Source of the DNA: Macrostomum lignano | Taxonomy: Eukaryota | Length of the DNA stretch: 64,000 nucleotides | Assembly (NCBI GenBank): GCA_002269645.1 | Contig: NIVC01001444.1 | Coordinates: 224,673-288,672, forward strand | Direction of reading: 5' to 3' | Part shown: piece after piece, positions 192-48,029 of the stretch | Position numbering within the stretch: position 1 is the first letter of the stretch | Layout: the number at the start of each line of letters is the position of its first letter | Notes under the pieces: model-generated | The model's input: the letters and a program-made list of their open reading frames with translations, nothing else | Databases searched by the model: none | Told to the model about the DNA's origin: nothing | Translations under genes and position numbers: made by a program

Positions 192-31908
<31,717 letters not shown>

Positions 31909-32020
31909 ATGGGCGATTTGATGGCGGATTTGCAGACTCATTGATGCGCATGAGTTCAAATGAGACAAATATGAGACAGATCTGTTCTTATGCTTACCTT
32001 TCAATAATATCATTCAGTTT

Positions 32021-32610
32021 TAGAGTGAGGTGGGTGTTGCGGAGTGAGGTGGGTGTTGTGGAGTGAGGTGGGTGTTTGGAGTGAGGTGGGTGTTTGGAGT
32101 GAGGTGGGTGTTGTGGAGTAAGGAGGGTGTTGCGAAGTGAGGTGGGTGTTTGGAGTGAGGTGGGTGTTTGGAGTGAGGTGGGTGTTGTGGAGTAAGGTGG
32201 GTGTTGCGGAGTGAGGTGGGTGTTGCGGAGTGAGGTGGGTGTTGCGGAGTGAGGTGGGTGTTGCGGAGTGAGGTGGGTGTTGCGGAGTAAGGTGGGTGTT
32301 GCGGAGTGAGGTGGGTGTTGCGGAGTGAGGTGGGTGTTGCGGAGTGAGGTGGGTGTTGCGGAGTGAGGTGGGTGTTTGGAGTGAGGTGGGTGTTGCGGAG
32401 TGAGGTGGGTGTTGCGGAGTGAGGTGGGTGTTGCGGAGTGAGGTGGGTGTTGCGGAGTGAGGTGGGTGTTGCGGAGTGAGGTGGGTGTTGCGGAGTGAGG
32501 TGGGTGTTGCAGAGTGAGGTGGGTGTTATGGATTGAGGTGAGGGTGCTGGAGGGTGAGGTGTGGGTTCTGGAGAGGGAGGTGAGGGTGCTGGAGGGTGAG
32601 GTGAGGGTGC
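32021..32610. repeat. 19-bp GAGTGAGGTGGG-core repeat
   Basis: ggagtgaggtgggtgttgc. Confidence 0.92.
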
Positions 32611-33221: not shown

Positions 33222-33895
33222 GGAGTGAGGTGGGTGTCTGGGGAGTGAGATGTGTGTCTGTGGAGTGGAGTGGGTGTCTAGGGATAGAGATGTGTGTCTG
33301 TGGAGTGGAGTGGGTGCCTAGGGATAGAGATGTGTGTCTGTGGAGTGAGGTGGGTGTCTGGAGAGTGAGATGTGTGTCTGTGGAGTGGAGTGGGTGTCTA
33401 GGGATAGAGATGTGTTTCTGTGGAGTGAGGTGGGTGTCTGGAGAGTGAGATGTGTGTCTGTGGAGTGGAGTGGGTGTCTAGGGATAGAGATGTGTGTCTG
33501 TGGAGTGAGGTGGATGTCTGGAGAGTGAGATGTGTGTCTGTGGAGTGGAGTGGGTGTCTAGGGATAGAGATGTGTGTCTGTGGAGTGAGGTGGGTGTCTG
33601 TGGAGTGAGGTGGGTGTCTGGGGAGTGAGATGTGTGTCTGTGGAGTGAGGTGGGTGTTTGGGAAGTGAGATGGGTGTCTGGGGAGTGAGGTGGGTGTCTG
33701 GGGAGTGAGGTGGGTGTCTGGGAAGTGAGGTGGGTGTCTGGGAAGCGAGATGGGTGTCTGTGGAGTGAGGTGGGTGTCTGGGGAGTGAGATGTGTGTCTG
33801 TGGAGTGAGGTAAGTCTGGGGAGTAAGGTGGGTGTCTGGGAAGTGAGATGTGTGTCTGTGGAGTGAGGTAAGTGTCTGGGGAGTGAGGTGGGTGT
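33222..33895. repeat. ~20-bp GAGTGAGGTGGG-core repeat
   Basis: ggagtgaggtgggtgtctg alternating with gagtgagatgtgtgtctgtg. Confidence 0.9.
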
Positions 33896-34287
33896 ACGAT
33901 CTGGGGTTGAGAGTGCGAGATGATTTTCAAATATTTTCTTATAAACTGGGAAAGGTGTGCTTTCATTCGAACAACACCAAGTCAGACCGAACTACGCTAA
34001 TCGTTTTTAACGTTAATAAACTTATCGAATACATAAACGAATAGATATATACGAGTATAAACTAAATCGCTTGCAGGTTTACGACTCATAAAACTGAGCT
34101 TAGGCATGCATAATTCAGTCAAAATATTTTATAGCCTAAAATCAGTTTCTTCCTTACTGATAGGGCTCAAGCTCGTCCCCGATCATCAGAGCTCACGCGG
34201 CTCAATCAAAACTGCAAAACTCAGTTTAAAGTTTTGGAAATCAAAGTAAACTGCAAAGTATATATATATATAGATTGCTGCCTAATT

Positions 34288-34460
34288 AACAATCCATTCT
34301 ATTCCACCATCCATGATTGGCTAGATTAGCAATCCATTCCATTCCATCATCCATTATTGGCTAGATTAGCAATCCATTCCATTCCATCATCCGTGATTGG
34401 CTAGATTAGCAATCCATTCCATTCCATAATCCGTGATTGGCTAGATTAGCAATCCATTCT
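34288..34460. repeat. 40-bp tandem repeat
   Basis: ctagattagcaatccattccattccatcatccatgattgg, about 4 copies. Confidence 0.85.
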
Positions 34461-35491
34461 ATCATCCAACTCATGCAAACTCATCCAGCTAACATTACGC
34501 ACTCAGATTATGCTGTAGCCCAGTGACACGGGGGGAAGGCCGCACAGGGCGGTGAGCAGTTCGTCCCGCCATCAATTAGTACAAAAATTAAGCTTCAGTT
34601 GCAGTCAGATAAGAATGTGCAGATAAAGATTGGACTGGCACAGGCTGGAGCTAACTTTGCTCAGCCATCTCGCTGCCACAGAAGGCTCTGTGCTGAATTC
34701 TGGATAAACTGTATGTCCATGGAACTGGACATGGACCACTGTAGATATCAAATATGGATTAGAAACCAAAAATTTATACATGTATAGATAAGGGACTTTT
34801 ACACAGAAAAATAGCAAAAATACTAGCAATCTGTGCCCCCGCTATATATAAACTATATGCAGCTTTTGACCTTGTAAATTCGATATTTTAAGTGCCCTAA
34901 TAAAAAAAATTTTTAAAGCAAAAAAGCATCAGCCCCGAGAGCCAGCTGTCTAGCCTAAGATATCAACATACCTCATGAGCTTTGGCATCTACGCCTCCCT
35001 TTAAGACTTTGGCTTGGCCGACCAACAACTTCCAATTGACCCTTGACATCTCAGCAACCCCCTCCATGAGCCCCAGCATCTCAGCAATTCAGACGGGTCC
35101 GCCCAAAACGTTCCTACAGCGCAGAGAACTGGACGCTGACAGACTCGCTCAAACAGCAAGCAGACGATTCGCATAGAGTGGCCGACGAACAAGTCACCAG
35201 TGCAGCACTCTGTCGCCTCGTTTGTCCAGGCAACCTGTTGCACCGTCGGCGACGCTGCAGGCACCTCACCGGTGATGACAGGCTACTCATCGACTGCTGC
35301 GTACTGGCTGACGCCGATGCTGACGTCAGCAGAGCGCCCAAGCCTTGAGACGGGCCCTCAGACGCTAACATGTAGAAAAAAATTAAGTTTCCACTCAACG
35401 CCCAGTCCAGTGGATTATCCAGGGATCCATGGATTGCCAAAGCCTTTCCCTATTGGCCAGTGCCGCTCGACGTCACCCCAGCGAGCCCAAA

Positions 35492-37242
35492 TTGAAGCGG
35501 ACTGCTAAAAGAAGATAAAACAGCCGCTGCCAGCAGCGCCAGCCGGAACTTTTGCAGCCGAGTGAAGAAAAGCAGAAACAGCTTTCTCAAGGGGAGAAAA
35601 TCACAGCACTGCTGCTTCCCCTTATCCCGCATTGCTCAGGTTAACAGGGTTCGATCCGCAGTCCATCCAAAGGTCACTACAATGCCATCAATTACTGACG
35701 GCAGCCTCACAGCCAAGCTAGCCGTCCATCTGCTGCTTCTCGTGCTTATCTCGATGCAGTGCAGCTGCTTTCACATCAACGAAGGTAAGATGAGGCTCTG
35801 GTTAGCTAGATCCTGGCTGTGGGATTTTGTTCCCAGTTTGAAATCTCAGCTATTGGGATATCTTCCCTTACATGTTCGTATTTGTTAATTGTTCCAGAAG
35901 CAGAGTGCGTGCAGATGTGCATATCAAACAGACTGCAGTGCTGTATGCAGTCGCTGCTCAACTCTGTCCTTAAAGCTGCTGTTTAACTTGGACATGCGTG
36001 CTCTGGCTTAGCACCTTTGTGCCACCAGCTGCTGGGCAAACATTTGCCTTCATTCTCCAATTTGATGTCTCTGAGGCGCGACACTTTTGGGGGGTGGGAC
36101 AATTTACTAATTTCTTATCACTGTATCGCCTCTACTGTGCCCACCTGGGCAACCAGGGCAACCAGGTGGCACAGACGGCCATTCAAAGCCAATTAAATTG
36201 TTTTCTAGGTAAAAGCAAGTGAAATTGGTCGATTTTGGGAGTTCTGAAAATAATAATAACCAATTTTGATAATTTGGGTTCAGTAAACAAGACTGATTTG
36301 CTAATTGTCTGGCTTGACATTTTATTTACAGTAGCTTTATTCTCATCTCCTACTCACAGTAGTTAGCATTATAACAGAAAGTGCTAGAAATCAGTAATTT
36401 ATTAGTAATTCTTTACAATAAGCTCGAATTCGGCTTAGGAAAGGGACTTCCAAATCTGTTCGGGCTCGATGGTTTTGTTTTAATCTTAAGAAACATCCGG
36501 TGATACAAGGCTAAAACAAACTGACTCATTTAAAAAAACTGATGTTTAACAGACGGAATTACGAGAGCTCGTAAAACTTGAAAGAAACTGACAAATGTCC
36601 GTTTCTGACCTTTTCAACTATGGCTATAAGGATTGTAGCTCCTTTATGGTTTTGCTTCAATAAAAACTCCGGTGTTAATGCATTTAAACAAACAGCAATC
36701 TCCGACTCTCCGACTACCATAGGCGCTGCTGACAAGGGGGAACAAAATTCTGATGGTATCGAACTCGACGAGGGAGGCGTCATCAGCATTGACGGCGGCC
36801 TCCAGGACGGTCTTGGCAACCGCCTGCCAATCGGTCAACACCCTGCCAAGACTAAGCGCTTCATGTACCACTCGAACGGCGACTGTCCGGTGTTCCGTGT
36901 CCAGTGTTTCAACAGCTACGACTGCTACAGGCAAACCGGCGACTACAACTATCGCTGTGTGATGCACCGCTGCGCCGTCAGCTGCTTCGATATGCGGCCG
37001 TACATGAAGTCGACGAAGTGACGCCCAAGTCTCATCTGGACTTCAAGCATTGCCTGCCGCGCAATGATGTAAAACTGCCACAACCGCTGCGTGCACTCAT
37101 TGAGATCGGCACTTAATAAAAAATGCAAAACAAAATATAAACCGCTGTCGGGCTAATTTCTGGCTTTGGAATGACCTGACCGTCGGAAATCTTCAAGTGC
37201 AACAGTACTTAAAGAGCTTAGCAATACTTTGGTATTCATTTC
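35492..37242 (+). repeat. Left arm of inverted segmental duplication
   Basis: Reverse-complement match to 39329-40867, from ttgaagcggactgc to gtattcatttc. Confidence 0.93.
35682..37021 (+). CDS. Secreted cysteine-rich peptide precursor, copy 1 (exons 35682-35784, 36723-37021; 133 aa)
   Basis: Exon 1 MPSITDGSLTAKLAVHLLLLVLISMQCSCFHINE with donor g|gtaaga; acceptor ccatag|gc in phase. Exon 2 has an acidic pro-region, KR, then FMYHSNGDCPVFRVQCFNSYDCYRQTGDYNYRCVMHRCAVSCFDMRPYMKSTK*; AATAAA at 37115. Confidence 0.8.
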
Positions 37243-37749
37243 CTCAATGAAAATAGTTGTCTAAAACTCTTTTAATCGGTGAAATTTTACCAATACTACC
37301 TAAAAAAACTGTGCTCATAATTAACAACCGATTGCCATAGCAGCTCCATCACCATAGCAACTGGATGAGTTCAAAGCACGGCTTTATCACCATAGCAGCA
37401 AATATATTATGCGGAATGGCGATGCAACCAGTATATAATGCATCCTAAAATTTCATAGCACACCAATATTTCCCTCAACTTAATGGCCGGGCGTAACGCA
37501 CTGACTGGAGGGTGAGTTTCAGAGCCGCTCGGGTCACGGATGCCTGAGACAGTCAGTCATAAAGCTCCGTGTCCATTCAGTCCCCGCGGGAATGGCGCGG
37601 ACATTCGGAGTCATTTTTACTAGCTGACTGCCATTTCGGTGGGCTGAATAACGCAACTGGAGCAGCTGGGGGGGGGGGGTGGTAAATCTTCCTCAGGCTT
37701 TGACTGACCGACCGCACAGAGTGGATAAATAAAGTAATGAGTCTTGCAC

Positions 37750-38235
37750 TGGGATACAAAGGCACTGGGATACTACAAGGGCATTGAGATACAAGGGCAC
37801 TGGGATACAAGGGCACTGGGATACAAGGGCACTGGGGTACAAGGGCACTGGGGTACAAGGGCACTGGGATACAAGGGCACTGGGGTACAAGGGCACTGGG
37901 ATACAAGGGCACTGGGGTACAAGGGCACTGGGGTACAAGGGCACTGGGATACAAGGGCACTGGGATACAAGGGCACTGGGGTACAAGGGCACTGGGATAC
38001 AAGGGCACTGGGATACAAGGGCACTGGGATACAAGGGCACTGGGGTACAAGGGCACTGGGATACAAGGGCATTGAGATACAAGGGCATTGAGATACAAGG
38101 GCACTGAGATACAAGGGCATTGAGATACAAGGGCACTGAGATACAAGGGCACTGGGGTACAAGGGCATTGAGATATAAGGGCATTGAGATTCAAGGGCAC
38201 TGAGATACAAGGGCACTGGGATACAAGGGCATTGA
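37750..38235. repeat. 16-bp minisatellite in the spacer between the inverted arms
   Basis: ggatacaagggcactg with variants. Confidence 0.93.
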
Positions 38236-39328
38236 GATATAAGGGCCCTCCTTAAAAGAAACTGGTGGCGCCACACCTGAACTCATCATCCAATCGACCA
38301 TGCGCATTTGGCTATCCTAATCAAAGGAGGGGAGGTGTTCACAGGGATTCTTCCCAGTCCAGGTGCATTTGCTCAGTCTCCAAGTGTCGGCTATACTTGT
38401 GGAGCAGATCAGCGGGAAGGCCGCTCTAGTGAATCATGTTTTGCTGCTCCATCTCGGGGGGGGGGGCTACAGACGCCCCCAAGCGGGGGCTTTGCCAGTA
38501 TTTCTGTCCTCCGAAAGCAAAATGGAAATCTCTTGTTTCTCCCCACTGTTTGCGCGACTTCTTAAATCAAAATCTAAGATCTCTCTACTCAATAGTATTT
38601 CTAAACGAACTTCATTCAACAGGCCTTGGTAAGAACTCCAGTATTTAATTAACTTGGTCTTGTTAGCAGAGAGGAGAAAGGTAGATGAGATGCAGAGACT
38701 ACGATGGAGAAGGGACGAGGCGTACTTGATTGAGTCGGGAATCAAGATGGGAAATGTAAAATTGATAAGAAAAGTCAGAAAAGTGAAATGGGAAAACAGT
38801 TGGTGTGCGCGAGGGATCCTTGTAGATGATGGAAAGATGCTGGTAGATGGGGAACTTTGAGATGGGGTTGTTTTGAGTATTCTGTGGCTAAAATTTCTGG
38901 GTTGCTATTAAGATCTTTTGATGTTTAAAACGTCAGTATCTTCCTTTTTGAGTCTGTTCTGCAGTGCCTGGTATGTCCCTCTCTAGAGTGAAAGTAAAGC
39001 AGATCTTAGTAATTATTTAACTCTCTAAGTTTCAATCTCTGATTGTTCATCTCTGGTCAGTGTCCTCAGTCGGAGAAGTGGCTTCTACATGACGTTTCAA
39101 TTCTAGAAAAAAGATGGAGCAGATGCCAATGGAATTACAGAGCTGGAGAGAATAGCCAACTTTGGTGTGGTGTCACACCCAAGTGTCGTTCGAATCAAGT
39201 GCATGGCTTCATTCCCCTTTTTACTTTTTATTAATTTTCGTACAAGCGGAAGTCGTTAAAACTATAGATTTTCAAAAAGTCGGTCAACTAACGAAGTTCA
39301 ATTTTAGTACACAGAAGTTCTTATAAAA

Positions 39329-40867
39329 GAAATGAATACCAAAGTATTGCTCAGCTCTTGAAGTACTGTTGCACTTGAAGATTTCCGGCGATTAGGACAT
39401 TCCAAAGCCAGGTATCAGCTCAACAATTGATGGAGTTTTTATTTCGCATTTAAAGTTAGTTTGGATCTCAATGAGTGCACGCAGCGGTTTGTGGCGGTTT
39501 TACATCATTGCGCGGCAGGCAATGGGCGTCACTTGGTCGACTTCATATACGGCCGAATGTCGAAACATCTGACGGCGCAGCCGTGCATAACACAGCGGTA
39601 GTAGTAGACACCGGTTTGCCTGTAGCAGTCGTAGCTGTTGAAACACCCCACACGGAACACCGGACAGTCGCCGTTCGAGTGGTACATGAAGCGCTTACGA
39701 TTATACTTGGCAGTGCGTTGACCGTTAGGCAAGCGGTTGCCAAGGCCGTCGCTAGCTCTGATGACGCCTCCCTCGTCGAGTCCGATTACGTCCAAATTTT
39801 GTTCTGTTTCGCCTTCGGTAGTCGGATAGTCGGAGATTGCTGTTTGTTTAAATGTACTAACACCGGAAATTTTTTTATTAAAACGAAACTATCGAGCCCG
39901 AACAGATTTGGAAGTCCCTTTCCTAAGCTGAATTCGAGCTTATTGTAAAGAATTACTAATAAATTACTGATTTTTAGCACTTTCTGTTATAATGCTAACT
40001 ACTGTGAGTAGGAGATGAGAATAAAGCTACTGTAAATAAAATGTCAAGCCAGACAATTAGCAAATCAGTCTTGTTTACTGAACCCAAATTATCAAAATTG
40101 GTTATTATTATTTTCAGACCTCCCAAAATCGACCAATTTCACTTGCTTTTACCTAGAAAACAATTTAATTGGCTTTGATGGCCGTCTGTGCCACCTGGTT
40201 GCCCTGGTTGCCCAGGTGGCACAGTAGAGGCGATAAAGTGATAAGAAATTAGTTAATTGTCCCACCCCCCAAAAGTGTCGCGCCTCAGAGACATCAAATT
40301 GGAGAATGAAGGCAAATGTTTGCCCAGCAGCTGGTGGCACAAAGGTGCTAAGCCAGAGCACGCATGTCCAAGTTAAACAGCAGCTTTAAGGACAGAGTTG
40401 AGCAGCGACTGCATACAGCACTGCAGTCTGTTTGATATGCACATCTGCACGCACTCTGCTTCTGGAACAATTAACAAATACGAACATGTAAGGGAAGATA
40501 TCCCAATAGCTGAGATTTCAAACTGGGAACAAAATCCCACAGCCAACATCTAGCTAACCAGAGCCTCATCTTACCTTCGTTGATGTGAAAGCAGTTGCAC
40601 TGCATCGAGATGAGCACGAGAAGCAGCAGATGGACGGCTAGCTTGGCTGTGAGGCTGCCGTCAGTAATTGATGGCATTGTAGTGACTTTTGGATGGACTG
40701 CGGATCGAACCCTGTTAACCTGAGCAATGCGGGATAAGGGAAGCAGCAGTGCTGTGATTTTCTCCCCTTGAGAAAGCTGTTTCTGCTTTTCTTCACTCGG
40801 CTGCAAAAGTTCCGGCTGGCGCTGCTGGCAGCGGCTTTTTTTTTCTTCTTTTAGCAGTCCGCTTCAA
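39329..40867 (-). repeat. Right arm of inverted segmental duplication
   Basis: Reverse-complement match to 35492-37242; lacks about 180 bp of the intron. Confidence 0.93.
39529..40677 (-). CDS. Secreted cysteine-rich peptide precursor, copy 2 (exons 40677-40575, 39812-39529; 128 aa)
   Basis: Exon 1 MPSITDGSLTAKLAVHLLLLVLISMQCNCFHINE|gtaaga; acceptor ccgaag|gc; exon 2 GETEQNLDVIGLDEGG...RKRFMYHSNGDCPVFRVGCFNSYDCYRQTGVYYYRCVMHGCAVRCFDIRPYMKSTK*. Confidence 0.8.
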
Positions 40868-41622: not shown

Positions 41623-42101
41623 GACAATGTAAATAGGAAAGTGGAAAGTCGTCGAAGCCGAAAATATTAATTTGTGTAAAAAGCTTATAAGATAAAATTA
41701 TGTTAATTGAATATGAACGGGATAATGTATAAAACTTGGATATTCAATCACTATATGTTAGATCAAGACCAGGGATACTTTTCAGGCAATTTTTCAACCT
41801 CTGATGAAGCTTAGGAGAGCTAGTATAGAGTCTTAAACTGCAGTCAGCTATAGTCTAAGCAGACTTAGCAAATAGAATTTGGGCCAAGAAAGTCAAATAA
41901 AGAATGAGAAGGAAAGGAGAATACGTGGGCAGGTTGCCAAAGGCTTTCTAACTTCGAGTATGAAAATCAATAAATCTTGCTTGTTTGCAAGATTTAGCAG
42001 CGAGCGCGGCCTCCCCAAGCATTTACTTACCGCGACCTCTGACCTGGCAATCACCTCCTGATCTTGCCGACTCAAGAGAGATCGTGTCGTTTGAGCAGCT
42101 A

Positions 42102-43393
42102 CGAGGGGCACTATTAAAGTTCTGAGCCTGACCAAGATCTTATAGTGGCAAAGTGTTGAAACTTTAGGCTCTAAAAGCGCCACATGTTAATAGTCTATTG
42201 TCAACTTTTCAGAATTTTCTGCATTCCCTAAGTCCCACTGCACCATTTTATTTCCTGCACCCCATGGCATTTTCTCAAGAATTGAAGCTTGAGCACAGGG
42301 CAGTGATTAAATTTCTGACTCTGGAGGGCTCAAAGCCTGCTGAAATTCAAAGCCGCATGGCTAGTGTGTACGCTGACGCTGCCCCCTCATACGCCACCAT
42401 AAAGTGCTGGGCAGCCGAGTTCAAGCGTGGCCGCGACTCGCTCGAAGATGACCCCCGATGTGGACGACCCCGGACTGCTGTCACTGCCGACAACATCCAG
42501 CGCATCCAGGCTCTGGTTGACAGTGACCAGCGGGTGAAAGTCAGGGAACTTGCGGCAGACACTGGACTCTCTGACCCGCAAGTCATTGAGATCCTGCACC
42601 AGCATCTTCATCTGTCCAAGGTTTCTGCCAGATGGATCCCACGAATCTTGACAAGGGACCAAAAGACCGCACGGGTGCAGTACTCAAAGCTTGTCCTGGA
42701 CTCCTACGATCCGGACCCTGCCAACTTTCTGTCCTGCTGCGTGACCGGGGATGAGACGTGGATCCATCACCACGATCCCGAGTCCAAGCAGGAGTCCAAG
42801 CAGTGGCTGCCAGTTGGTTCACCTGCACCACTGAAGGCACGGACTGCATGCAGTGCGGGCAAGATTATGCTCACCGTCTTCTGGGATGCCAAGGGCCCGC
42901 TGCTGCTGGACTTTCTACCGCACAAGCAGACAGTCACAGGCGCCTACTACGCTGACCTGATCGCCCGTCTGCGCGAAGCAATCAAGGAAAATAGGCGAGG
43001 GATGCTGAGCCGAGGTGTTGTGCTGCTGCACGACAATGCACCGGCCCACACTAGCAGGATTGCCAAGGCTGCTGTCAGTGTCGCAGGGTTTCGAGAGCTG
43101 CCGCACCCAGCCTATTCACCAGACCTGGCCCCGAGCGACTTCCACCTGTTTCCACATCTCAAGCGGGCGCTCCGTGGACAGCGATTTGACACTGATGATG
43201 CGCTGAAGGATGCTGCAACTGCTTGGTTTGAGGGCTGCTCGGTGCAATTCTTCCAGAGTGGCATTGAGGCGCTGCGATCAAGATGCCATAGTGCATCTTG
43301 GTTGGGGGAGACTATGTTGAGAAAAGCTGATCTCACTTTGCCCATATCTCCTCTCTTTCATATTAAGGCTCAGAACTTTAATAGTGCCCCTCG
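42102..43393 (+). mobile_element. Mariner (DD34D) DNA transposon, full length 1292 bp
   Basis: Perfect 28-bp TIRs cgaggggcactattaaagttctgagcct; TA at 42100-42101 and 43394-43395. Confidence 0.97.
42264..43330 (+). pseudogene. Mariner transposase with a 1-bp deletion near the C-terminus
   Basis: RWIPRIL, VTGDETW, LHDNAPAH, YSPDLAPSD with 34 residues between the last two Asp. The expected ending KCILVGGDYVEKS* lies in another frame after catagtgc; could be a sequencing error. Confidence 0.85.
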
Positions 43394-43398
43394 TAATT

Positions 43399-44781
43399 AG
43401 AATTGCTCAGCGGGTCTCAGACTCAATGGGGAATTGCTCAGCGGGTCTCAGACTCAATGGGGAATTGCTCAGCGGGTCTCAGACTCAATGGGGAATTGCT
43501 CAGCGGGTCTCAGACTCAATGGGGAATTGCTCAGCGGGTCTCAGACTCAATGTGGAATTGCTCAGCGGGTCTCAGACTCAATGGGAAATTGCTCAGCTGC
43601 CTCAGACTAAATGGAGAATTGCTCAGCTAGCCACAGACTAAATGGGGAATTGCTCAGCTAGCCACAGACTAAATGGGGAATTGCTCAGCTGCCTCAGACT
43701 AAATGGGGAATTGCTCAGCTAGCCACATACTCAATGGGGAATTGCTCAGCTGCCTCAGACTAAATGGGGAATTGCTCAGCTAGCCACATACTCAATGGGG
43801 AATTGCTCAGCTAGCCACAGACTAAATAGGGAATTGCTCAGCTAGCCACAGACTTAATGGGGAATTGCTCAGCTAGCCACAGACTAAATGGGGAATTGCT
43901 CAGCTAGCCACAGACTAAATGGGGAATTGCTCAGCTAGCCACATACTCAATGGGAAATTGCTCAGCTGCCTCAGACTAAATGGGGAATTGCTCAGCTAGC
44001 CACATACTCAATGGGGAATTGCTCAGCTAGCCACAGACTAAATGGGGAATTGCTCAGCTAGCCACAGACTTAATGGGGAATTGCTCAGCTGCCTCAGACT
44101 AAATGGGGAATTGCTCAGCTAGCCACAGACTAAATGGGGAATTGCTCAGCTAGCCACAGACTAAATGGGGAATTGCTCAGCTAGCCACAGACTAAATGGG
44201 GAATTGCTCAGCCGGCCACAGACTAAATGGGGAATTGCTCAGCCGGCCTCAGACTCGATGGGGAATTGCTCAGCCGGCCACAGACTAAATGGGGAATTGC
44301 TCAGCCGGCCTCAGACTCGATGGGGAATTGCTCAGCCGCCTCAGACTCAATGGGAAATTGCTCAGCCGGCTCAGACTCAATGGGGAATTGCTCAGCTAGC
44401 CACAGACTCAATGGGGAATTGCTCAGCCGGTCTCAGACTAAATAGGGAATTGCTCAGCTAGCCACAGACTCAATGGGGAATTGCTCAGCCGGTCTCAGAC
44501 TCAATGGGGAATTGCTCAGCTAGCCACAGACTCAATGAGGAATTGCTCAGCCGCCTCAGACTCAATGGGGAATTGCTCAGCCGCCTCAGACTAAATGGGG
44601 AATTGCTCAGTCGGTCTCAGACTCAATGGGGAATTGCTCAGCCGGTCTCAGACTCAATGGGGAATTGCTCAGCCGGTCTCAGACTCAATGGGGAATTGCT
44701 TAGCCGCCTTAGACTCAATGGGGAATTGCTCAGCTAGCCACAGACTCAATGGGGAATTGCTCAGTCGGTCTCAGACTCAAT
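43399..44781. repeat. 31-bp minisatellite
   Basis: gggaattgctcagc(gggtct/tagcca)cagact(c/a)aatg with blocks of variant units. Confidence 0.95.
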
Positions 44782-45639
44782 GGATGTTGCTAATATAAGC
44801 TCATTATGATGTCGAGTTAACTCCATGGCATGCAGGTGAGAACAGCCTTGATAAAGGCTTAAAATTTTAAGTTAGGAATAAAAAGAGGCAGTCATTAAAT
44901 TTGAGCCATAATCAAAGCTGATTTTGATTAAAACAAAATTATTTTTATTTGTTTTTGAGCTCATAACACGACTGGATTTTGAGCACAGAATTAAAATATA
45001 TTAGTAATTAAAGAATAGCAATTTGACTTTTTAGGGTCTAAAAAAATCAGCATCTCAACGACAACGCTGATAGGCACATTGTTCAGATGTATAGACACAA
45101 CGATCGGGAACTGTTCCAAAATAGGATTCAACTTAAAACAAGAGCAGATGCTACAGAAAAAATTATGCAACAGATGCGTATCACGCTACTAATAAGTAGG
45201 AGAGACGTAATTGCGCTAGCCGAAATTGAAGATTTTAGCCTAGGCAAGAGCTTTATATTAATAATGTGCACGATTGTATGGCTTTCTTTCAAAATTTCAA
45301 AAGTATTTGAAAACAAAAACATATAAGAAGTGGAAATCTGTAACACTGCTCAACAAGATTTTTATTTAGAACTAATAGACAGACAGATAAATCGAGCGAT
45401 GGGGACATTATAGAATTAGAAAATAACTAAGCTATGCAAATAAAAATAGTAGACCGATTTTTGGATTAAATTTTGGCAGCAGCCATGACGTCAGAGCCAG
45501 TACTGTCGGTAAGAGGGAGGCTCTTTAGTCTATGGCCAAGTGTAGTGCTAGTCATCAACAGTTCGTGTTGCAACCTTGCTGAGACAAAAATATTAGTGGC
45601 CATCTATTTCGTTAAGTTCAAGATTATGCTGTCTCCATG

Positions 45640-46054: not shown

Positions 46055-48029
46055 TCAAATAGGAAACACAAATTCACCAGAATTCAACCTCGGCTCAGGG
46101 GCATAGTCAAACTTGAACACCGTAGCCTGGCTGTACTTCGATCCGGGCGTCAGCAGTGACGACGGAAATTCCGGATGGTTGAGCGAGTCGGGATAGAGCT
46201 GGGTCTCGAAGCACAGGCCAGCGTGGCGGCTATACTGGCAGCCGCCTTTGCCAGGCACCGAGTCAATGTAATAGCCGGTGTAGAACACCAGCACTGGCTG
46301 GTCAGTGCGGCAGCTCAGCCTCCGGCCGCTGCTCAGCTCCTCGGCAACTCCGGCAGCTGGTGCCGATTCGTCATCAACCGACTGACCAGAGGCCGAGTCT
46401 AACACGTAGATGTGATCAAAATTGATGCCGTCAGACAGTTTGCGGCCGGCGCCGCGAAGGTCGGACGGAGTGCCATCGACGGGCAGTACGCGGCCAGTGG
46501 GCAGCAGCTCGGCGTCCAGTTCGATCAGACGGGAGCTGGCAAGCTGCCAAAAGTGGGGATAGGGTAGACTGGATGATGAGGCTGTTTGGGATTGGGGAGG
46601 TTGGATGGTGAGGCTGGATGATGAGGCTGTTTGGGGATCGGGGAGGGGGTTGGATGATGAGGCTTTTTGGAGATGGGAATCGGGAGGCTGGATGATGAGG
46701 CTGTTTGGGGATCGGGAGGCTGGATGATGAGGCTGTTTGGGGATCGGGGAGGCTGGATGATGAGGCTTTTTGGGGATCGGGGAGGCTGGATGGTGAGGCT
46801 GCTTGGGGATAAGGGAGGTTGGATGATGAGGCTGTTTGGGGATTGGAGGCTGGATTATGAGGCTGTTAGCGGATTAAAGAGCATGGATGATGAGACAGCA
46901 TAGGATTCGGGAAGTTAGATAATGAGGATGTTTGAGGGCCGTTTGGGGATTGGGGACGCTGGTGATAAGGTTAGCTACATACATGCGCAACCCCTGATTC
47001 ACACTGGCCGTGCGAATAACTTTTTGACCAAAAATTGGACTTGCCTGTGAAATGAACCTAGAGAAAGATTAATGCAATTTTTGGTAAACGGCAGGAGTAA
47101 CTCGGTGGTCTTATTAAGGCTAAAGGCCTCGTCATCTAATTAGTACTACGTCTATTTTTCGGGCTGGCCTTTTTGCGACTTACCTTGGCTGGGACCCTCG
47201 CCAGCCGGCCGGGTGTTGCGCATGTTTGTGAGGCTGTTTGGGATTAAATAGGCTGAATTAGGAGACAGTTTGAGGATTTGGGAGGCTTGGTGATGAGACT
47301 ATTTGGTGATGAGGTCTGACGAGCTAGGACTTCTAAAAAGATTGGCGGCTGCTAATTCAGTTGATAATATCATCAACTAGGCCATCCTTAGGCTTAAGTC
47401 CCTCCGCATAAGCGCAGTGAATTCCGAACCTGGACTCGATGATTAGAGACGTCACCGGACGAGTGGCCAGACAGATTGAAGTAGGCGTGATTAGTGAGGC
47501 TCACTGGACACGGTCGGTCGCACTCGGCCGAGTAGTTCAACCGCAGACTGTTGTCATTAGAAACTGTGTAGGTGACGGTGACGCGCAGGTTGCCAGGGTA
47601 GCCATCTTCGCCGTCCTTGCTAAGCAAGCTGAGCGTGACGGAGTCCTCGCCCAGATTGTCAATGTTCCACACTGCTCTGGTGAGTCCGCGCTCGCCGCCG
47701 TGCAGACTGTGCCGACCGTGATTGCGAGTGACGCTAACGGGTTGATCGCCGCCAGGCAAGCTGAACTGGGCGTCCTTGACTCGGCCTGGCTGGCGTCCAA
47801 CAACAAAGCCGAAGTAGCACGGACAGCTCTCGTAGCCTTGCACCGTGTCGTAGCCGAGCACGACGTCGGTTGGGGGGTCGCACGGGTTGCGCGAAGGGCA
47901 GTAGAGACTTTGCAGAGCGGCACCATAGGTCAGCACGTGGGCCTCGAAGCCACCAGGGCTGCGCAGTACAATCTTTTGAACTTCGCGACCGTCACTTGTA
48001 CGGCCGAATAGTTCGGACACGGCTACCAT
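46055..48029 (-). CDS. GALM: Aldose 1-epimerase / galactose mutarotase (exons 48029-47430, 46543-46055; 362 aa)
   Basis: Motifs TYGA, DVVLGYD, SLHGG, DGEDGYPGNL, TNHAYFNL, LLPTG, FDH, YTG, CFETQ; cag|gttcgg and ttggcag|ctt junctions in phase 0. Confidence 0.95.
46560..46960. repeat. ~33-bp minisatellite in the GALM intron
   Basis: gaggctggatgatgaggctgtttggggatcggg. Confidence 0.88.

Follow-up and report, generated by a model that had tools for sequence, protein, structure and literature searches.

A tail-to-tail gene pair in Macrostomum lignano encodes members of an orphan family of predicted secreted six-cysteine pre-pro-peptides

The flatworm Macrostomum lignano is a transgenic model, amenable to RNA interference (RNAi), for regeneration, ageing, adhesion and sexual selection, in which peptide signalling and secreted effectors are little characterised. 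Here we describe two genes, termed gene A and gene B, that lie tail-to-tail within a 64,000-nt stretch of its genome (GenBank assembly GCA_002269645.1, contig NIVC01001444.1, positions 224,673 to 288,672, forward strand; this whole stretch is the window, and all coordinates are given within it). Our analysis of the sequence and of deposited models indicates that they belong to an orphan family of predicted secreted six-Cys pre-pro-peptides, found so far only in M. lignano and partly annotated already as hypothetical proteins.

Results

Structure and products of the gene pair

Genes A and B converge within an inverted repeat, the parts of which are as follows.

35492–37253, plus strand: left arm of the inverted duplication (gene A unit), comprising about 190 nt of 5′ flank and untranslated region (UTR), exons, intron and 3′ UTR
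35682–35784, plus strand: coding part of gene A exon 1, with Met, hydrophobic leader and start of the pro-region (34 codons plus 1 nt, phase 1)
35785–36722, plus strand: gene A intron, 938 nt, GTAAGA...CCATAG
36723–37021, plus strand: coding part of gene A exon 2, with acidic/Gly-rich pro-region, TKR, six-Cys domain and TGA stop
36854–36859, plus strand: putative proprotein-convertase Lys-Arg (KR) codons of gene A, the KR being invariant in four paralog groups and its cleavage predicted
36860–37018, plus strand: predicted mature peptide A, 53 residues, FMYHSNGDC...KSTK, isoelectric point (pI) 8.6, six Cys
37115–37120, plus strand: AATAAA polyadenylation signal of gene A, about 95 nt past the stop
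37254–39317, no strand: unique spacer separating the 3′ ends and containing a 16-nt minisatellite
40868–39318, minus strand: right arm of the inverted duplication (gene B unit), pairing with the left arm
40677–40575, minus strand: coding part of gene B exon 1, differing from gene A at 2 nt, one of which gives S28N
40574–39813, minus strand: gene B intron, 762 nt, GTAAGA...CCGAAG, splice sites assigned by homology with gene A
39812–39529, minus strand: coding part of gene B exon 2, with pro-region, RKR, six-Cys domain (mature part 39690–39532) and stop
39438–39443, minus strand: AATAAA signal of gene B, about 90 nt past the stop

Translation of the exon coordinates reproduced the gene structures proposed in an initial annotation of this DNA, namely two intact two-exon genes on opposite strands with GT..AG introns. 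Both reading frames are intact, giving products of 133 residues (gene A) and 128 residues (gene B). Each product starts MPSITDGSLTAK and continues into a hydrophobic run, LAVHLLLLVLI, with a mean Kyte-Doolittle value of 3.1. The hydrophobic leader described for exon 1 is therefore present, and its assignment as a signal peptide rests on this hydrophobicity. Behind the leader come an acidic Gly-rich stretch, the dibasic site reported for both copies (TKR in A, RKR in B), a Phe and the C-terminal domain. The last 53 residues, taken as the mature peptide, have the spacing C-x6-C-x5-C-x10-C-x4-C-x3-C in both products and differ between them at six positions (Q/G, D/V, N/Y, R/G, S/R and M/I), none of them Cys, exactly as annotated. 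The gene A intron carries a 176-nt segment (about 36485–36660) with no counterpart in gene B.

The same convergent pair is found on two further M. lignano contigs, NIVC01004306 (L001) and NIVC01000540 (L005), which are 94–99% identical to the window over the aligned non-repetitive blocks around the pair. This occurrence on three contigs fits the known redundancy of the neopolyploid M. lignano genome (PMC5730564). Frames, splice sites, KR and cysteines of both copies are intact in all three loci. An assembly palindrome can be ruled out for this reason, the inverted pair being diverged on all three contigs, with arms about 19% apart in exon 2. No third copy was found within the window by tblastn.

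The spacer minisatellite (37746–38246; unit GCACTGGGATACAAGG, 16 nt, 31 copies, 91% matches) is flanked by runs of G10–11 at about 37670 and 38460, and produces spurious minus-strand open reading frames (ORFs) of 160–200 residues.

Existing annotation and transcript evidence

Gene A is 98–99% identical to the M. lignano proteins BOX15_Mlig017203g2 and g3 (‘hypothetical protein’, partial), and the g1 copy (BOX15_Mlig017203g1) falls in the same protein cluster. Gene A is thus deposited as BOX15_Mlig017203g1-3, with A-type models from all three loci. The deposited proteins PAA47864, PAA67911 and PAA81298 have an exon junction, ...FHINE/GAADKGE... (junction at the slash), identical to that of gene A. 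The deposited A-type proteins carry 49–53 extra N-terminal residues that represent 5′ UTR read-through. Because this stretch contains no Met, we place the start of gene A at 35682, the first in-frame ATG of the annotated transcript.

Gene models for this assembly in GenBank were built solely by genome-guided RNA-seq transcript assembly combined with TransDecoder, in a pipeline that dropped low-expressed and repeat-overlapping transcripts (PMC5730564). Since the deposited A-type models therefore come from RNA-seq transcripts only, and share the junction, spliced A-type transcripts must exist. The lack of a spliced transcript at 35784/36723 had been set beforehand as a result that would refute the gene structure; the junction at this position is that of the RNA-seq-derived GenBank models. 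No gene model is present at the gene B position on L001 or L005. The description of the pair as unrecognised consequently stands for gene B, which has no deposited model, and falls for gene A, which is a GenBank hypothetical protein with the same junction. A full-text literature search gave no occurrence of Mlig017203, and nothing on the peptide family was found in the literature on Macrostomum cysteine-rich peptides, neuropeptides, antimicrobials or single-cell data.

A family of four paralog groups

We carried out an exhaustive HMMER search of 1.84 billion representative proteins with a profile consisting of the pro-tail and mature domain. All true matches come from M. lignano and define a family of four paralog groups: the query’s own, Mlig006190 (117 residues, E = 8e-14), Mlig025436 (92 residues, E = 9e-6) and Mlig004136 (92 residues, E = 1e-5). 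A profile of the four groups found no further members among 5.8 billion clusters. The HMMER match P0004 (995 residues, 14 repeats of a Cys/Ser/Leu-rich unit) was rejected as a low-complexity artefact.

Common to all groups are a leader, a variable pro-region (about 20–55 residues), the KR site, a domain of 48–53 residues and, after 91–103 nt of coding sequence, a single phase-1 intron. The leader of each member contains, within its first 25 residues, an 11-residue window of mean Kyte-Doolittle value 2.65–3.4. The pro-regions cannot be aligned across groups, whereas the KR and mature domain are conserved, with an invariant core K-R-F-x-x-x-S-x-G-x-C-x6-C-F-x3-D-C-x9/10-C-x4-C-x3-C. The Asp/Glu/Gly-rich pro-region noted initially is a property of genes A and B but not of the family, the pro-regions of members P0005 and P0006 being short and non-acidic. 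Net charge ranges across members from −1 to +5 and pI from 5.5 to 9.3: A, B and P0003 carry a net positive charge, and of the other paralogs one is anionic (pI 5.5) and one nearly neutral. None of the other three groups has a partner copy within 8 kb on either side. A transposon origin of the genes was also considered and rejected, as Pfam identifies no transposon domain in them and the other paralog groups are single-copy at three other loci.

Relationship to named families

Pfam searches with the full precursors and mature domains of eight members returned nothing above cut-off. The weak matches (vWA_Ro60, DUF5332, VF530, Nodulin_late at E = 1.6e-4, zf-TRAF_2 and PAN_3) were treated as noise. 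Sequence and profile searches of the PDB gave no meaningful match, those to LDL-receptor class A repeats and nitric-oxide synthase (E about 1–9) being rejected. A full-length match to a characterised family or a transposon, named beforehand as a finding that would overturn the annotation, was not found in these searches. HMMER, Pfam and PDB searches thus agree with the initial proposal of a lineage-specific family that cannot be placed in a named one.

UniProt gives some members the automatic name ‘BPTI/Kunitz inhibitor domain-containing’ and one (A0A267DLA0, which is P0005) ‘ShKT domain-containing’. We therefore compared the family by hhalign with control profiles for WAP, Kunitz and CSαβ defensin domains, each of which retrieves the PDB structures of its own family (for WAP: SLPI, elafin, nawaprin, anosmin and omwaprin). 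Membership of the WAP family (PF00095) was rejected: hhalign gives 4.2% over 16 columns, covering only the C-terminal C...C...C stretch, Pfam finds no WAP match at E <= 10, and the eight cysteines and CC doublet of WAP domains are absent from all four paralog groups, which have six cysteines and no CC. The resemblance to WAP domains such as SLPI domain 2, elafin and omwaprin lies in the size of the secreted disulfide-rich domain (~50 residues), the G-x-C-P start with six residues to the next Cys, the C-terminal C-x(3-4)-C-x3-C and the top fold match of both structural models described below. Set against these likenesses are the different cysteine complement, a shorter Cys2–Cys3 loop, a predicted two-turn helix, a predicted KR-processed pro-region, the lack of any sequence or profile signal and fold matches that fall below significance.

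Kunitz membership (PF00014) was likewise rejected, with hhalign at 2.1% over 14 columns and no Pfam match. The family shares with BPTI/Kunitz domains six cysteines and a 14-residue stretch resembling the Kunitz β-hairpin segment RYFYNAKAGLCQTF, but the Kunitz spacing C-x8-C-x15-C-x7-C-x12-C-x3-C is not found, and no Kunitz structure appears among the fold matches. The resemblance of RF[LM]Y-x-S-x-G-x-C-x-x-F to the Kunitz segment probably accounts for the automatic name. ShKT domains (PF01549) have in common with the family six cysteines, a C-terminal C-x(3-4)-C-x(2-3)-C and a pre-pro-KR precursor, which is also seen in cnidarian ShK-like neuropeptides. The ShKT fold is, however, all-helical and incompatible with the β-hairpin predicted here; Pfam gives no ShK match, no ShKT structure is present among the fold matches, and membership was rejected. 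Judged from sequence and models, neither automatic name is supported. CSαβ defensins resemble the predicted form of the family in their helix followed by a β-hairpin, their three disulfides and their signal-pro-dibasic-mature precursor. They differ from it in having the CxxxC helix motif and CxC strand motif, where the corresponding spacings of the family are C-x5-C and C-x3-C, and charge is not conserved among its members. With hhalign at 0.2%, CSαβ membership was rejected as well.

Predicted fold

Two separate AlphaFold2 predictions, for the mature domain of A and for that of P0005 (about 40% identical), drew on a common family alignment of 7–8 sequences. Both models have the same topology, with mean pLDDT (predicted local distance difference test) of 78 for A and 82 for P0005, and 83–91 in the core. 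A flexible N-terminal decapeptide is followed by a β-bridge (15–16), a helix (21–28) and a β-hairpin (33–37/41–46). The block directly after the KR has the lowest pLDDT (52–63) in both models.

A Foldseek search of the PDB with the two models gave no significant match. The top matches of both are WAP domains (SLPI 4doq_B and 2z7f_I, elafin 6atu_J; E = 0.28–3.6), with omwaprin 3ngg_A among the first matches in the first run. These superpose with template modelling (TM) scores of 0.38–0.50 and, for the second model, root-mean-square deviations of 2.2–4.5 Å over 36–45 columns. CSαβ scorpion peptides rank lower, with TM scores of 0.29–0.34 normalised by query length and up to 0.43 by target length. 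The resemblance to a WAP four-disulfide core that was pointed out initially therefore survives, weakly supported, as the nearest known shape of both models, given the E values, the 4% hhalign score and the absence of eight cysteines and CC. The models weakly suggest a family fold nearest to WAP domains, reproducibly so but below any threshold for membership.

Divergence and history of the pair

The similarity of the two arms is sharply uneven. Across 961 nt that comprise the 5′ flank, exon 1 and the initial ~700 nt of the intron, A and B are 96.9–98.4% identical in the three loci, compared with 80–82% in exon 2 and about 84% in the 3′ UTR. For the arms of the window taken alone, the values are about 98–99% over the 5′ part and 78–91% over exon 2 and 3′ UTR. 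The A-versus-B identity in the 5′ part is not below that between A copies of homeologous loci (97.6–99.0%), and near-identity stops at the 176-nt segment found only in the gene A intron. From the sequence comparison, in which this contrast between 5′ half and peptide exon recurs in all three loci, we infer that the inverted duplication is old (dS about 0.3 in the mature region) and that gene conversion subsequently made the 5′ half of the pair uniform, at roughly the time of polyploidisation. The same appearance would result from a partial re-duplication at a later date. The inverted duplication itself would predate polyploidisation, and the mosaic pair (5′ half about 98%, peptide exon about 81%) provides a small and clean example of partial gene conversion.

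In the mature-peptide codons, A and B differ with dS (synonymous substitutions per site) of 0.27–0.43, dN (non-synonymous) of 0.05–0.08 and dN/dS of 0.13–0.27 (about 0.17 overall), estimates that rest on 15–19 substitutions. A-type copies differ among loci by 0–1 non-synonymous and 2–4 synonymous changes. Two derived changes of gene B, Q to G and R to G, fall at positions kept in the other paralogs. The substitution pattern points to purifying selection on the mature peptide, with gene A tightly constrained and gene B evolving faster.

Discussion

The peptide as a candidate extracellular ligand

We favour the reading, with a probability of about 0.4, that the peptide acts outside the cell as a signalling ligand, in the manner of a hormone or neuropeptide. 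The precursor would enter the secretory pathway at the endoplasmic reticulum through its hydrophobic leader and be cut after the KR by a furin/PC-type convertase. The released peptide, of about 5.3–6.4 kDa, would be a helix-plus-β-hairpin mini-protein with three disulfides and a free, flexible N-terminus F-[LM]-[YF]-x-S-[NG]-G. The disulfide core would serve as a scaffold that holds this N-terminal ‘message’ tail, and the conserved tail would engage a receptor. What suggests such an arrangement is that the most conserved block of the family, the seven residues directly after the KR, is nevertheless the least ordered part of both models. The pro-region diverges freely and the mature part does not. 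The family is also small and dispersed, with only the A/B locus having a local duplicate, and its low dN/dS is unlike that of expanding toxin or antimicrobial arrays. A membrane-active cationic peptide is made less likely by the range of net charge and pI among members. The closest functional analogy is to the ITP/CHH family and eclosion hormone, which likewise combine a signal, a pro-region and a KR with a six-Cys peptide of 50–70 residues whose N-terminus is conserved, and are encoded by small dispersed gene families under purifying selection. The analogy does not extend to sequence, in which there is no similarity and the cysteine spacing differs, and ITP/CHH-type hormones are mainly helical.

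A number of points weigh against a ligand. KR cleavage, signal-peptide cut and disulfide pairing are predictions; the nearest folds are WAP protease inhibitors and not hormones; and toxins and defensins are just as typically made from a pre-pro-KR precursor with a helix-plus-hairpin disulfide core. Needs of folding or processing could account for the conservation beside the KR, and no receptor is known for the peptide. The four family gene identifiers were not found in the supplementary texts searched for M. lignano studies. The remaining points concern gene B: no B-type protein occurs in the 5.8-billion-cluster database, the B-type copies differ among loci by 4 non-synonymous changes and 1 synonymous change, and the homology of the arms reaches only about 190 nt beyond the ATG on the upstream side, past which the DNA is unrelated and, on the gene B side, AT-rich. 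Given this boundary and the lack of a deposited B transcript, gene B may be without the promoter of gene A.

These same observations on gene B bear on a rival that concerns the pair only, in which gene B is a silent or decaying duplicate and its intact frame is residual, aided by gene conversion from A. We regard this as possible but somewhat doubtful. It is in line with the derived Q to G and R to G changes and with the deposition of A-type models from all three loci where no gene is called at the B position on L001 or L005. It is harder to reconcile with a frame, splice sites, KR, six cysteines and AATAAA that are intact in three independently evolving loci, or with the A-versus-B dN/dS of 0.13–0.27 at a dS of about 0.3–0.4, which implies that gene B was constrained during most of its history; moreover, the annotation pipeline would have discarded a low-expressed or repeat-overlapping transcript. 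Gene B would thus be a silent copy or else a second gene that evolves faster.

Alternative functions

The best supported of the other functions, although in our view unlikely, is canonical inhibition of serine proteases, possibly with antimicrobial activity besides, by a WAP-like domain in which one WAP disulfide has been lost and which is secreted into gut, mucus or reproductive tract. In WAP inhibitors the P1 residue follows the second Cys (Leu72 of SLPI, Ala24 of elafin), a role for which the Phe after the second Cys would be available here. This CF is invariant in the family, WAP domains are the top fold matches of both models, and both the G-x-C-P...x6...C start and the C-terminal C-x4-C-x3-C are WAP-like, the latter being the stretch that hhalign aligns. 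The invariance is double-edged, as the reactive loops of inhibitor paralogs are usually hypervariable and the putative P1 never varies. The Cys2–Cys3 loop has five residues against eight in WAP, and the models carry a two-turn α-helix that is absent from WAP cores; to these are added the non-significant Foldseek E values, the 4.2% hhalign score over 16 columns, and six cysteines with neither CC doublet nor Pfam match. A defensive or antimicrobial effector with a defensin/CSαβ-like helix-plus-hairpin core, released from epidermal or gut gland cells, appears quite improbable. The helix, hairpin and three disulfides do recall CSαβ peptides, of which scorpion examples occur lower among the Foldseek matches; two members give a weak match to Pfam Nodulin_late (defensin-like nodule-specific cysteine-rich peptides, E = 1.6e-4, with no curated cut-off reported); and A, B and P0003 are positively charged. 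A substitute defence family is plausible in flatworms, from which the classical CSαβ, big-defensin and myticalin groups are reported to be missing (PMC10414684). The CxxxC and CxC motifs are missing, however, hhalign reaches only 0.2%, TM scores to CSαβ structures stay at 0.29–0.34 (up to 0.43 by target length), and an anionic and a nearly neutral paralog exist. The low dN/dS and small copy number are atypical of antimicrobial or toxin families, and M. lignano is not known to have a venom apparatus, which counts against a toxin or defence effector.

Comparably improbable is a role in reproduction, in which the peptide would be secreted to act on the mating partner, as a component of prostate-derived seminal fluid or as a pheromone carried by water or mucus. 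Seminal-fluid candidates of M. lignano are reported to be largely small, secreted and lineage-specific proteins without homologs (PMC5977470), a description that matches a lineage-restricted family predicted to be secreted. Supplements of the seminal-fluid screen, the positional/evolutionary RNA-seq work and the germline/neoblast re-analysis gave no match to the family identifiers, a weak negative given that these files are incomplete or name genes by other systems. Reproduction-related genes are reported to evolve rapidly in Macrostomum (PMC7336406), and the purifying selection on gene A is unlike this. For the specific roles proposed initially, namely defence, prey capture or seminal fluid, we found no support, and the low dN/dS, non-conserved charge and small dispersed family fit a ligand better.

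A more far-reaching version of the ligand hypothesis would have the family represent a previously undescribed three-disulfide α/β mini-protein fold, restricted to macrostomids, and a new class of cysteine-rich hormone or pheromone. Its F-L-Y-x-S-N-G tail would activate a receptor, and gene conversion would keep the transcribed 5′ ends of A and B (5′ UTR, leader exon and most of the intron) identical while the peptide exon diverged towards a second ligand specificity. As a whole we consider this combination unlikely.

What is new here is the definition of a four-member orphan family, the finding that its Kunitz and ShKT names are unfounded, and the identification of an unannotated second copy, gene B. 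In situ hybridisation, RNAi and peptidomics can now be directed at defined members of the family. If these are ligands they would add a lineage-specific hormone system; as inhibitors or antimicrobials they would be relevant to the report that flatworms are without classical cysteine-rich defence peptides (PMC10414684). This significance is tempered by the fact that orphan cysteine-rich secreted peptides are common in invertebrate genomes.

Genomic surroundings

Upstream of gene A, a perfect palindromic cyclic AMP response element (CRE), TGACGTCA, lies at 35321–35328, 361 nt before the ATG, and an ACGTCA half-site is found at −212. The two sites are kept at all three homeologous A loci; neither occurs upstream of gene B or of the other three paralog groups. 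We considered the CRE as a neuroendocrine hint and dropped it, as it is missing from the gene B and paralog promoters and occurs three times in the window, where 0.5 copies are expected.

Satellites flank the pair at 33222–33895, 34285–34459 and 43400–44783, with copy numbers that differ between the window and L001. Those upstream of gene A are a 20/40-nt G-rich array and a 40-nt array. On the other side, about 1.2 kb past the outer end (40868) of the gene B arm, lies a mariner/Tc1-type element (42100–43395; 1,296 bp) with perfect 30-nt terminal inverted repeats and an intact transposase ORF (42198–43400; 400 residues; Pfam Transposase_1, DDE_3 and HTH_48). It is absent from the homeologous contig L001 and so is probably a recent insertion, possibly still active. 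A satellite with a 31-nt unit (45 copies, higher-order period 277) begins directly after it.

Further long ORFs occur elsewhere in the window. Those overlapping on the two strands at 2651–5359 (902 residues on the minus strand, 836 on the plus strand) have no Pfam match and are probably an artefact of composition or repeats, not a gene. At 15790–19665 (minus strand), an uninterrupted ORF of 1,291 residues with aspartyl protease, reverse transcriptase, RNase H and integrase represents the pol of a Ty3/gypsy-type long terminal repeat (LTR) retrotransposon.

The upstream neighbour of the pair (about 24000–32500, plus strand; 1–4237 on L001) is a TRPM2-like cation channel gene, the last part of which is full of 22-nt and roughly 40-nt tandem repeats. 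The L001 channel model has LSDAT, TRPM2, Ion_trans and NUDT9 domains. An older UniProt model named for the channel domain (A0A1I8I8E7, 1437 residues, ‘Ion_trans domain-containing’) clusters with the peptide protein, and so may be a fusion of the channel and peptide genes, i.e. an annotation artefact. The downstream neighbour is an aldose 1-epimerase exon at 47394–48029 (minus strand; Pfam E = 5e-45), which is also found near the pair on L005.

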